From positions 186,001 to 250,000 of the IMG/VR virus record IMGVR_UViG_3300028676_000003: 64,000 nt of DNA; one strand, 5' to 3'. The notes below the pieces were generated by a model that searched no databases, had not been told where the DNA came from, and saw only the letters and a program-made list of their open reading frames with translations. The translations under genes and the position numbers were made by a program. Numbering within the stretch: position 1 is the first letter of the stretch; every line of letters begins with the position of its first letter. This document shows positions 37,383 through 41,497 of the stretch, one piece after another.

Positions 37383-37754
37383 GGGGATGCCAAGGTATTG
37401 ACTGTCTAGTAGTACGAGGTAAGCATGTAGTGAGATGACAACTATCACTTAAATCTATGTTATCAAAAATGTAATTGACAACGATTTATTCGTATCAGAA
37501 AATTTCTTCGATGAAGCTGTAATGGTTTCTACAAGAGAGCTTGCAGTAGCCTAATACTTGCACATGGTTGTATACAACCTGATGATAGTAATCTATCAGA
37601 ACCCATTTTCGTCACTGTGGTAAAGAGGCGAGGTTTGATGATAGTGTAAACCTTAATAACACCTTTTAAAGATTGCTGGTTATATGAATCAGATAAACAT
37701 GTAGAAAAAATCGTGGTATTATCCAACACAGGGGTTCGATTCCCCTCATCTCCT
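37383..37754 (+). ncRNA. ssrA: tmRNA
   Basis: GGGGATG/CATCTCC acceptor with G3-U70, 3' T-arm GGGGTTCGATTCCCC, internal tag frame 37477-37554 DNDLFVSENFFDEAVMVSTRELAVA*. Confidence 0.9.
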
Positions 37755-37886
37755 CAAAAACAAATGCTTTAACAGCTACTATCCCTACCAAGGAACACTA
37801 GTAATATTATGCCAATTATATCGTCTATAATTGGCATTTGTTTTTAACTCTTTCAGTTTTTCACATATTTATAAATAAAAAAGAAT

Positions 37887-38977: not shown

Positions 38978-39050
38978 TGCGGGGTAGAGCAGTTGGTAGC
39001 TCGCAAGGCTCATAACCTTGAGGTCGTCCGTTCGAATCGGGCCCCCGCTA
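38978..39050 (+). tRNA. tRNA-Met(CAT), initiator-like
   Basis: Cloverleaf, CAAGG-CTCATAA-CCTTG, 1:72 mismatch. Confidence 0.9.
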
Positions 39051-39079
39051 CTAGAATCGTGAGGATTTAAAACTCAAAT

Positions 39080-39152
39080 TAGTGATATCGTCTAAGTTTA
39101 AGATGGCTCCCGTGGAGGGAGTTGATAAAGGTTCAAGTCCTTTTATTGCTAC
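39080..39152 (+). tRNA. Atypical tRNA-like element, anticodon unclear
   Basis: Acceptor TAGTGAT/ATTGCTA, T-arm AAAGG-TTCAAGT-CCTTT, arm CTCCC-GTGGA-GGGAG. Confidence 0.55.
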
Positions 39153-39158
39153 ACATAT

Positions 39159-39229
39159 TGCGGTTTAGTGTAATTGGTAACATGACGGGCTCATAACCCG
39201 AAGTCGAGGTTCGAGTCCTTGCTCCGCTA
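39159..39229 (+). tRNA. tRNA-fMet(CAT)
   Basis: GGG/CCC anticodon stem, CTCATAA loop, 1:72 mismatch. Confidence 0.85.
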
Positions 39230-39236
39230 CAGATAA

Positions 39237-39299: not shown

Positions 39300-39364
39300 A
39301 CTTATAAAAAGAACCTCATCATATCGGTGAGGTTTTTTATTTTAAAACAATAAATAATTTAACA

Positions 39365-40043
39365 ATGGGAAAACTTAATTTAGAAATCCGTGACGCAGAA
39401 GGTGGAACTGATGCGAAGTTGTTAGTAAGTGTGATGAAAGAAATCTACACGAAAACAGCTAAAAATAACAATTTAGAATGTACAGTAGTTGAGGAAAGAA
39501 ATGGGTTCGCCCATCTATGTCTTTAGCGGGGCTGATGTAGATAAAATATTCGGAAACGAAGTAGGAAACCACAGATGGCAAAGGGTACCGCCTACGGAAA
39601 AGAAGGGTAGAGTTCACACAAGTTCTATTACAGTTGCAATTCTAGGAGAAAACGATTATCAAGAGGTTGAAATATACCCAAGTGAATATCGCTTAGAAAC
39701 AACAAGAGGAACAGGAAACGGTGGACAACATAAGAATTCAACAGATTCTTGTGTGGTTGTAACTCACATTTCAACTGGAATAAAGGTTGTAAGAGATGGA
39801 AGGGACCAACATAAAAACAAAGCAGAAGCACTAAAAGAAATTCATTTAAGAGTTAATAATTTCTACAAGACAGGTCACGATGATGCGGCCAGTCAAGAAA
39901 GAAAAGAACAAATAGGTGACGGTGGACGTAGTGATAAAAGAAGAACGTATAGAGTTAAGGACTCATTAGTAATTGACCACGTAACGAATAAAACTGCTTC
40001 AATGAAGGACATATTAAGAGGTAAAATTGAACTATTATCATAA
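39365..40043 (+). CDS. RF1-type peptide chain release factor lacking domain 1, expressed by predicted +1 frameshift at CTT-TAG (39521-39526); about 225 aa
   Basis: Frame 0 MGKLNLEIRDAEGGTDAKL...HLCL*; +1 frame has 'HRWQRVPPTEKKGRVHTS' (PxT), GGQ and 'RSDKRRTY'. Confidence 0.85.
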
Positions 40044-40658: not shown

Positions 40659-41017
40659 TACTTGGTGAAAGACTTCTTCAAGAAGAATGGTCTAGCTTAG
40701 GAACACAAATAATGGGTTTCAGGATAAGTACTTGGACAGTTGGAATTGCCAGTGATGAAATTGAAGCTATGGTTCATCATAAATTATGGATTCCATTATG
40801 TGAGAAAATAACTGAATCATTAGATGCTAGAAATCAAATACGATATGGTTTTAGGTAAAAAACTTCCAATTAGACATTGGACCGATATAGGTAAATGTCT
40901 ATTACATAGAGATATATCAGACCCATATAATTTTATAGTTAATATGGAAATTGATAGAATGATTAATATGATGGTTTGGAGTAGGGTTGGTAGGACAATA
41001 GTTTTTCAGCCTACGAT

Positions 41018-41497
41018 ATGAGAGTAGCTGGAACAGGTCATAGACCTGATAAACTAGGTGGTTATTCAAATAAGATGCATTTAAATCTTGTTTCAATAGC
41101 AGAAGAAGCTCTTAAGAAGATTAAACCAACTGAAGTTATATCAGGGATGGCGATGGGGTGGGATATGGCACTAGCGCAAGCGGCAATTAACCTTGGAATA
41201 CCACTAATAGCGGCTGTTCCGTTCAAAGGACAAGAAAAAGCGTGGTTTGAGAAGACTCAAAAATATTATCATAGCTTACTATCTAAGGCGAAAGAGATTG
41301 TAATTGTTTCTGAAGGTGGATTTACCAAGGGAAAGATGCAAATTAGGAATGAATGGATGGTTGATAACTGTGATTTGGTGTTGTCGATGCATAATGGCGA
41401 CAAATTTGGTGGAACCTTCAACTGTATAACATACATTGAGAATAAAAAGAAACCAAATATTAATTTATATACAAAACTTAAAATAGAAAATGAATAA
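41018..41497 (+). CDS. SLOG/YspA-like (DUF1273) protein
   Basis: 'GTGHRPDKLGGY', 'ISGMAMGWD', 'RNEWMVD', 'GGTFNC'. Confidence 0.8.
   Translation: MRVAGTGHRPDKLGGYSNKMHLNLVSIAEEALKKIKPTEVISGMAMGWDMALAQAAINLGIPLIAAVPFKGQEKAWFEKTQKYYHSLLSKAKEIVIVSEGGFTKGKMQIRNEWMVDNCDLVLSMHNGDKFGGTFNCITYIENKKKPNINLYTKLKIENE

Follow-up and report, generated by a model that had tools for sequence, protein, structure and literature searches.

The window, the whole 64,000-nt stretch of DNA analysed here, derives from a large AT-rich phage and carries a gene for a class-I release factor that is divided over two reading frames. Our main reading, to which we assign a probability of about 0.72, is that this gene encodes a phage RF1-type factor without domain 1, which would be made by a prfB-style programmed +1 frameshift in competition with the decoding of UAG. 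The structure of the gene, the RF1-type motifs, the conservation of the shift cassette and the selection acting on both halves are shown by the comparisons reported below. The feature is real and well beyond chance, and it most probably represents a known mechanism in a new form, with an RF1-type gene, UAG as the stop codon and no stimulator in the window's class.

The 0-frame part starts at ATG 39365 (MGKLNLEIRDAEGGTDA...HLCL), and its 3' end is formed by CTT (39521-39523), TAG (39524-39526) and C (39527). The +1 frame is entered with AGC at 39525 (SGADVDK...) and stays open until TAA at 40041-40043 (Table 1). Joined at ...HLCL-SGADV..., the full-length frameshifted protein comprises 225 residues. 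The ATG is separated by 25 nt from the upstream tRNA-Met gene and terminator-like hairpin; this hairpin, with its loop of 9 nt, was missed by the hairpin scanner.

Table 1 Features of the release-factor gene and the surrounding translation genes (positions in the window)
Feature	Position	Strand	Evidence
Phage tmRNA	37383..37757	+	Rfam RF00023, 66 bits vs gathering score 47; missed by ARAGORN
tRNA-Met, tRNA-Pro, tRNA-Met, directly upstream of the release-factor gene	38978..39230	+	
Terminator-like hairpin (AACCTCA / TGAGGTT) with T run, between tRNA cluster and release-factor start	39312..39339	+	Direct reading of the sequence
ORF1, 53 codons, 0 frame, N-terminal part of release-factor domain 2 (LEIRDAEGG...HLCL)	39365..39523	+	Pfam PCRF positions 103-144, NCBIfam RF1 positions 107-148
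Shift cassette TGT CTT TAG C: E-site Cys codon, slippery P-site CUU, A-site amber stop, then C	39518..39527	+	
ORF2, +1 frame, 172 codons and TAA: remainder of domain 2, domain 3 with GGQ, domain 4	39525..40043	+	NCBIfam RF1 172-333 (E 1e-48), Pfam RF-1 5e-22, PCRF 165-194
0-frame read-through dead end CGG GGC TGA, 3' of TAG	39527..39535	+	
PPT, RF1-type PxT "tripeptide anticodon", inside HRWQRVPPTEKKGRVHTS	39588..39596	+	PPT falls on PAT when a continuous relative is aligned to E. coli RF1
GGQ, peptidyl-tRNA hydrolysis motif	39720..39728	+	
tRNA with anticodon CUA (amber suppressor), proposed competitor for the shift-site UAG	42804..42879	+	ARAGORN; Rfam tRNA, 61 bits
PTH2-type peptidyl-tRNA hydrolase gene, starting ATG AAG TAG with amber as codon 3 (43063-43065)	43057..43407	+	Pfam PTH2, 31.9 bits vs cut-off 23

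On the RF1 profiles of Pfam and NCBIfam, the two pieces of the window's protein fall end to end (107-148, then 172-333), and the interval between them is bridged by the 17 junction residues. With the NCBIfam models, the ORF2 product scores 166 bits for RF1 and 91 bits for RF2; the former value remains below the equivalog cut-off of 400, as expected of a truncated, divergent protein. Pfam RF-1 gives 78 bits at a cut-off of 35. The decoding loop HRWQRVPPTEKKGRVHTS, aligned on HRVQRVPATESQGRIHTS of E. coli RF1, follows the RF1 pattern (Q-R-V-P-x-T-E ... H-T-S) and not SPF. An RF1-type loop is kept throughout the 166 loci examined, where SPT or PPN variants are few; this uniformity is partly built in, as our scan patterns required a P(P/S)T-type loop. 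The window's two pieces were searched separately, and the alignment to PDB entries was made with the continuous relative P0029, which the database gives as an uninterrupted protein. P0029 spans E. coli RF1 residues 113-340 and matches RF1 at 3e-39, RF2 at 4e-25 and PrfH at 6e-11. On its alignment to E. coli RF1, the window's ...CL-SG... sits on ...KISG..., and the junction is gapless.

Domain 1, which provides the contacts to RF3 and the L7/L12 stalk, is missing from the window's protein, as the match begins at RF1 residue ~107-113. There is no room for this domain because the tRNA-Met gene and the terminator-like hairpin lie directly upstream of the release-factor start. The relatives all begin at the same point and likewise have no domain 1. 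Two other identities were considered and rejected. PrfH reaches 60 bits with TIGR03072 (cut-off 167), and its PDB match is far behind that of RF1; the ArfB model gives 18 bits (cut-off 100), and a PCRF (domain 2) part is present. By motifs and profiles, the window's protein is of the RF1 type, is not a full prfA orthologue since domain 1 is absent, and is neither PrfH nor ArfB. Its stop-codon specificity and its activity in peptide release are inferred.

A first-pass annotation, made from the sequence alone, had already described the gene in these terms. It had claimed 53 codons of domain 2 from ATG 39365 to CTT TAG C, the remainder with PPT and GGQ in the +1 frame, and a TGA that is met after CGG GGC when the TAG is suppressed in frame; all three held upon inspection of the sequence. 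The claim of an RF1 type without domain 1 held on motifs, profiles and the upstream tRNA-Met and hairpin. The claim that no Shine-Dalgarno-like (SD-like) stimulator lies upstream held as well, as such a run is absent within 12 nt of the window's CTT.

Over 6,516 bp, the window is identical to two IMG/VR contigs (274 kb and 368 kb) from different metagenomes. Nineteen distinct sequences, with 45-87% protein identity, shift exactly where the window does. Their junction reads TG(T/C) CTT TAG C (n = 17) or TG(T/C) CTT TGA C (n = 2), and CTT accounts for only 26% of the Leu codons in the window. Synonymous sites are near saturation among the window-class sequences (pS 0.5-0.9). Both halves of the release-factor gene are under purifying selection, with dN/dS of 0.10-0.28 for the N part and pN of 0.09-0.26 against pS of 0.5-0.9 for the C part (window compared with relatives). 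Ahead of the junction, the +1 leader has 3-13 codons in most of the class, and the 0 frame is shut 1-10 codons past the stop in most relatives. An ATG is found in the leader of 8/19 sequences, and start positions, where present, vary. No ATG, GTG or TTG occurs in 5/19 leaders; therefore, the second half cannot start independently there.

An SD-like stimulator is present in only 1/19 window-class sequences. RNAalifold, applied to 14 of them from 21 nt before to 80 nt after the shift site, returned zero pairs of conserved RNA structure. A small hairpin (ATGGG-TTCG-CCCAT, 39501-39514) was considered as a shift element and rejected, as it is not kept in the relatives. In three relatives (L034, L037 and L118), the CTT TAG C shift occurs together with an in-frame TGA. 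A nucleotide search of GenBank phages gave one weak match only, and the relatives came from protein-level searches. Among the results of these searches were dozens of distinct proteins (62-95% identity) that start with a short leader ending in YVFSG, YAFSG or FAFSG; this leader is TGTCTTTAGCGG read in the +1 frame.

For the wider family, 246 loci were gathered from IMG/VR, JGI metagenomes, GTDB genomes and GenBank huge phages, and the 224 distinct ones were classified. Of these 224 members, 152 can join their N- and C-terminal parts only through a +1 shift. The last 0-frame codon at the junction is CTT in 151 and TTT in one; the stop is TGA in 86, TAG in 65 and TAA in one; and the base after the stop is C in 124/152. 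The presence of a CTT/TTT-stop junction in all 152 distinct shift-requiring relatives excludes its origin by chance. Most of these sequences (133/152) shift 17 codons upstream of the window's position, after ...RRG-L, and form a separate clade that is GC-richer than the window's. Their DNA reads CGG AGG GGT CTT TGA C, or has TAG in place of TGA, which corresponds to a GGAGG-type run, three bases, CTT, the stop and C. Such a run is found within 12 nt of CTT in 111/133 upstream-class sequences, about 3 nt before it. At the sequence level, the upstream class has the complete architecture of the prfB cassette (motif according to PMC12421855).

In 56 members the gene is continuous in a single frame. 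Two in-frame TGA codons occur in 31 of them, one TGA in 19, a TGA together with a TAG in four, and none in two. The genetic code was examined by aligning neighbouring genes: over 11,175 aligned codons, the neighbours of continuous members contained 134 TGG and no TGA, and they lack such in-frame TGA or TAG codons. Therefore, those phages do not use TGA generally for Trp. The in-frame TGA is most often the codon just before Leu, where the window has Cys TGT, and the base that follows is A or C and never T. With 54/56 genes carrying an in-frame TGA or TAG, we consider it very likely that the continuous relatives are recoded as well, by a different route. Recoding of a stop codon, by shift or read-through, is required in 206/208 classifiable members.

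On the tree, the window's type is interleaved with the in-frame-TGA type. In the other, upstream-shift clade, TAG and TGA have been swapped at least eight times, even between near-identical Kofleriaceae copies. The stop at the shift site showed no association with the decoding tripeptide; the members are all P(P/S)T, a loop that the scan patterns partly imposed. No matching suppressor tRNA was found within 3 kb of the TGA-type loci. The family occurs in phages, including the huge-phage genomes LR745206 and LR7565xx, and in bacterial genomes (Myxococcota and others); Minicystis rosea and Thiobacillus denitrificans have copies on the chromosome. RefSeq annotates a copy on a Variovorax plasmid as a 56-residue hypothetical protein and a "peptide chain release factor-like protein." The family is large and appears to have escaped recognition so far.

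The release-factor gene is part of a conserved translation island with the order tmRNA, tRNA-Met, tRNA-Pro, tRNA-Met, release-factor gene, YpsA/SLOG protein, tRNA(CUA), PTH2, two tRNA-Cys and CCA-adding enzyme. In many relatives the tmRNA occupies the equivalent relative place, and the tRNA-Met ahead of the release-factor gene is conserved. The tRNA(CUA) lies 1-3 kb downstream of the release-factor gene in relatives of both the frameshift and the in-frame-TGA type. Compared with the Gln, Lys and Trp tRNAs of phages, it showed no clear match that would assign its amino acid. The M-x-TAG start of the PTH2 gene is kept in ~28 relatives. We infer that amber read-through is probably in use in the window's phage group, next to the gene for the very factor that is expected to terminate at amber; this inference rests on sequence alone.

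The long genes of the window use the standard code, and 76% of them end in TAA. ORF coverage with TAG or TGA read as sense gave no clear code signal, either in the window or in the 6.5-kb loci. A small ORF further on, at 43385-43663, has a Trp codon in the window that is replaced by TAG in four relatives. SD-like leaders precede only 4/64 window genes, and most leaders are A/T-rich. In the window-class loci 4% of leaders are SD-like, compared with 32% in the upstream-class loci. The absence of an SD stimulator from the window's class is in keeping with the translation style of the phage. The G+C content of the window is 33%, and one relative was binned with a Bacteroidetes genome. Together with the scarcity of SD, these features may point to a Bacteroidota-like host, which is an inference only.

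In the proposed mechanism, the ribosome would pause with peptidyl-tRNA-Leu on the P-site CUU while UAG-C, a poor terminator, occupies the A site. The tRNA-Leu would then re-pair one base forward on UUU, and AGC would be decoded next. Two outcomes are predicted to compete with this shift. Termination at UAG, whether host RF1 or the phage factor brings it about, would release a 53-residue peptide, and in-frame reading of UAG by the phage tRNA(CUA) would yield a 56-residue dead-end product. Accordingly, slow decoding of UAG would raise the output of the factor, and an abundance of RF1 activity or of the suppressor would depress it, so that the circuit would be the prfB feedback moved to RF1 and UAG. 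The ribosomal nature of the shift, its efficiency, the feedback and the stop specificity of the product are all inferred. For the Mimivirus release-factor gene, CUU UAG C was shown to support +1 frameshifting in E. coli (PMC3521657). With no SD-like stimulator and no conserved RNA structure, the efficiency in the window's class might be low; there are no expression data, and neither the product nor its yield has been shown.

The self-feedback part of this reading needs to be qualified. The stop is TGA at 86/152 shift sites, and TAG and TGA are swapped while the loop remains RF1-like; therefore, feedback by the own product is not a general rule of the family. It is conceivable that it is not the main point in the window either. 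Two explanations are possible for the TGA shift sites, a dependence of synthesis on host RF2 activity or a PPT/SPT loop with a broader stop-codon range than that of RF1; we cannot decide between them.

In view of these results, the first-pass annotation was correct in the main, and its regulatory logic remains inferred. Its claim of a prfB-style programmed +1 frameshift is supported by strong comparative evidence. The check it had proposed, an alignment of homologues for a conserved CTT-TAG, gave TAG in 17/19 same-position relatives and TGA in 2/19, with CTT throughout. It had named continuous homologues as a refutation; some homologues are indeed continuous, yet 54/56 of these carry an in-frame TGA or TAG that is absent from neighbouring genes. 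Its concern about a single-base indel error is countered by the two identical contigs and the recurrent junction in distinct relatives. The proposal that the slippery codon is paired with the stop its own product reads fits the window and fails across the family, where 86/152 sites have TGA with an RF1-like loop. It remains an inference that synthesis of the factor requires slow UAG termination, and likewise that the suppressor tRNA lowers its output.

Several alternatives have to be considered. The first is a bolder version of our reading, which is possible. Here, recoding would be the defining trait of an unrecognised family of RF1-like proteins without domain 1, present in jumbo phages and bacterial genomes and acting as sensor and effector of stop decoding, with the factor made only when ribosomes linger on the stop codon. 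In the window's clade, the release factor would be wired to tRNA(CUA), the amber-gated PTH2 and tmRNA as a switch of the UAG state during infection. By extension, the free TAG/TGA swaps may reflect a PPT/SPT loop able to read all three stops, which would make the protein a natural omnipotent release factor of the bacterial type. In favour of this version, recoding by a CUU-UAG/CUU-UGA shift or by UGA/UAG read-through is needed in the 206/208 classifiable members.

A second, unlikely alternative accepts a real programmed frameshift and denies the self-feedback. The shift would report the stop-decoding state of the infected cell, i.e., host RF1 or RF2 activity or a rise of suppressor tRNA, or it would set a fixed low yield. 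In the window, the release-factor gene, tRNA(CUA) and the amber-gated PTH2 would then jointly form a UAG switch. This view is supported by TGA at 86/152 shift sites and an in-frame TGA or TAG in 54/56 continuous genes despite the RF1-type loop. It is also supported by the toggling of TAG and TGA (at least eight swaps on the tree, and swaps even among Kofleriaceae copies that are nearly identical) and by the conservation of tRNA(CUA) and of PTH2 with TAG as codon 3 beside the release-factor gene. Against it, the stop in the window and in 17/19 of its class is TAG, the codon read by an RF1-type factor, and because of this, self-feedback is inherent in the window-class architecture. The two views are not mutually exclusive, and the existing data do not separate them.

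It is very unlikely that the gene is a split gene whose 53-residue N peptide and separately started C fragment (e.g., from ATG 39501) assemble without a frameshift. ATG 39501 does belong to the +1 frame and follows a GAGGA at a distance of 5 nt, and an ATG is found in the +1 leader of 8/19 relatives. However, 5/19 leaders have no ATG, GTG or TTG, and the start positions differ elsewhere. The phage hardly uses SD sequences (4/64 genes), and the GAGGA codes for a conserved Glu-Glu-Arg. A split gene could do without an invariant CTT-stop-C, without a constant +1 offset and without the gapless fit at the junction of 152 sequences, and the prfB stimulator is present in the upstream class.

Transcriptional slippage, in which RNA polymerase omits one U and brings part of the mRNA into frame, is similarly improbable. 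The outcome, CUU AGC, would be identical to that of a ribosomal +1 slip. However, the conserved in-frame stop, the C that follows it and the SD-like element of the upstream class are ribosomal signals. A run of three T is far shorter than known tracts of transcriptional slippage.

An artefact or decay, i.e., a one-base insertion in the T run by sequencing or assembly or a recent pseudogene, could be suspected since the junction lies inside a TTT run and one T fewer would give an uninterrupted frame, but it is practically ruled out by the two identical contigs from different metagenomes, by the recurrence of the junction in 19 distinct sequences here and 133 at the other site (many studies, assemblers and isolate genomes), and by purifying selection on both halves.

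We therefore retain the programmed +1 frameshift as the preferred reading. The prfB frameshift is the textbook case of translational feedback, and on this reading the window's family gives its RF1/UAG counterpart many times over. The family has two independent shift positions, and its shift sites occur with and without an SD stimulator, in line with how the likely host translates. The toggling stop codon is a natural experiment on what the frameshift senses. The family also bears on how large phages with suppressor tRNAs manage termination versus read-through, and on how far a release factor works without domain 1. For annotation, the consequence is that genes of this family are currently entered as two products, one a "hypothetical protein" and the other a truncated "release factor-like protein."

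The closest known system is the +1 frameshift of bacterial prfB (RF2). Both share CUU, the in-frame A-site stop, the next base C, the +1 direction and the location in a class-I release-factor gene; the family's upstream class additionally has the SD-like element at 3-nt spacing, as in the prfB motif (SD-like, 3 nt, CUU UGA C; PMC12421855). In contrast to prfB, the window's gene is of the RF1 type, is phage-borne, uses UAG as the stop and belongs to a class without an SD stimulator. Its site is in domain 2, whereas the prfB site is at codon 26 of domain 1, which the window's protein does not have. UAG occurs in 0/8,164 prfB motifs (PMC12421855). The same 2025 survey of >12,000 genomes showed no programmed frameshift in prfA, where interrupted genes look like pseudogenes, and inferred that only RF2 needs frameshift control (PMC12421855). 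According to a 2016 review, a UAG/RF1 counterpart of the prfB frameshift was unknown (PMC5009743). In the literature we searched for a phage or RF1 frameshift, nothing was found beyond prfB and the eRF1 genes of the giant viruses Mimivirus and Megavirus.

In these giant viruses, the class-I release-factor genes R726 (Mimivirus) and mg280 (Megavirus) combine UGA-C read-through with a +1 frameshift at CUU UAG C or CUU UAA C (PMC3521657). The likeness includes a virus-encoded release factor and the identical heptamer CUU UAG C, and L034, L037 and L118 also add an in-frame TGA. The giant-virus proteins are eRF1 of the eukaryote/archaea type from viruses of amoebae, whereas the window's family is a bacterial-type RF1 (PCRF and RF-1) of phages and bacterial genomes. 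The two devices are of independent origin.

Among phages, those with recoded TGA encode RF1 in a "code-change module" with suppressor tRNA and TrpRS (bioRxiv 10.1101/2021.08.26.457843), and RF1/RF2 genes have been reported for huge phages (PMC7162821). The window's gene likewise lies beside a suppressor tRNA and other translation genes. Some huge-phage genomes of the latter work (LR745206, LR7565xx) contain members of the window's family. These papers, however, describe release-factor genes in the standard code and mention no frameshift or in-frame stop, and unlike in the TGA-recoded phages, the window's suppressor reads UAG, the same codon as RF1. Finally, PrfH (RF-H) and ArfB have likewise lost domain 1 and kept GGQ. 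Both are without the RF1 decoding loop, whereas the window's family retains it.

The third codon of the gene for a PTH2-type peptidyl-tRNA hydrolase is an amber codon (TAG, window 43063-43065), and a tRNA with the anticodon CUA is encoded shortly upstream. The M-x-TAG start of this gene is kept in about 28 related loci, two of which belong to the distant clade of the release factor (RF) family. The PTH2 gene appears to be amber-gated, which is a possible reading inferred from sequence alone.

Features of the window around the RF gene
Feature	Window position	Remark
tmRNA, phage-encoded	37383-37757	Rfam 66 bits
YpsA/SLOG-family protein	40994-41497	
tRNA, anticodon CUA	42804-42879	
PTH2-type peptidyl-tRNA hydrolase	43057-43407	begins ATG AAG TAG
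Small ORF	43385-43663	
CCA-adding enzyme	44629-45765	PolyA_pol head domain, 4e-34

The position of tRNA(CUA) is conserved at 1-3 kb 3' of the RF gene. Its acceptor end is formed by G1-C72 and G2.U71, the anticodon stem has a G27.A43 mismatch at its top, and the discriminator is A73 in the window and U73 in some relatives. As a comparison with the phage Gln, Lys, and Trp tRNAs gave no clear resemblance to any of them, the inserted amino acid is left unassigned.

In the small ORF, the window has Trp (ERSW...), whereas its homologues at four loci of RF-gene relatives (L008, L030, L036, and L039) have an in-frame TAG (ERS-TAG-...). A separate observation concerns the RF gene of the L022 group, where TAG is present at a place in which sister genes carry TGA. 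In-frame TGA codons, one or two per gene and at fixed positions, occur in the relatives whose RF gene is continuous, i.e., in a single frame (L010, L012-L017, L019-L021, L107-L111, and others). They are confined to the RF gene, and no TGA was found in 11,175 aligned codons of the neighboring genes, compared with 134 TGG. The base following these in-frame TGA codons is A or C and never T.

Several related phages (L054, L071, L119, L126, and L129) encode a tRNA-Leu with the anticodon AAG at most 3 kb from the RF gene. Judged by its anticodon, this tRNA would decode the slippery CUU codon. Its closeness to the RF gene may still be a coincidence because these five loci lie within large tRNA arrays.

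The tmRNA was not called by ARAGORN despite its Rfam score, and it occupies the same relative place in many relatives. The CCA-adding enzyme and the YpsA/SLOG-family protein share the island with 21 tRNA genes. Across the whole window, an SD-like motif precedes only 4 of 64 long ORFs, the ORF leaders are A/T-rich, and TAA terminates 76% of the long ORFs. Taken together, these features suggest a bacterium without SD pairing, possibly a member of the Bacteroidota, as the host.

RF genes lacking domain 1 and carrying CTT-TGA/TAG are also found in bacterial assemblies, mostly of Myxococcota (L167-L246, from GTDB; prophage copies were not distinguished). The isolates with such a gene include Minicystis rosea, Pyxidicoccus fallax, Thiobacillus denitrificans, Achromobacter anxifer, and Novimethylophilus. 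A further copy (L247) is located on the Variovorax plasmid NZ_LR594690, where the RefSeq annotation splits it into two CDS.

The PPT tripeptide of the decoding loop is replaced by PPN in L081, L160, L066, L140, and L139 and by SPT in L116, L042, L118, L059, L136, L142, L117, and L134. Neither variant is associated with the stop codon at the shift site. SPT is a mixed tripeptide that begins with the residue opening the RF2 motif and ends with the one closing the RF1 motif.
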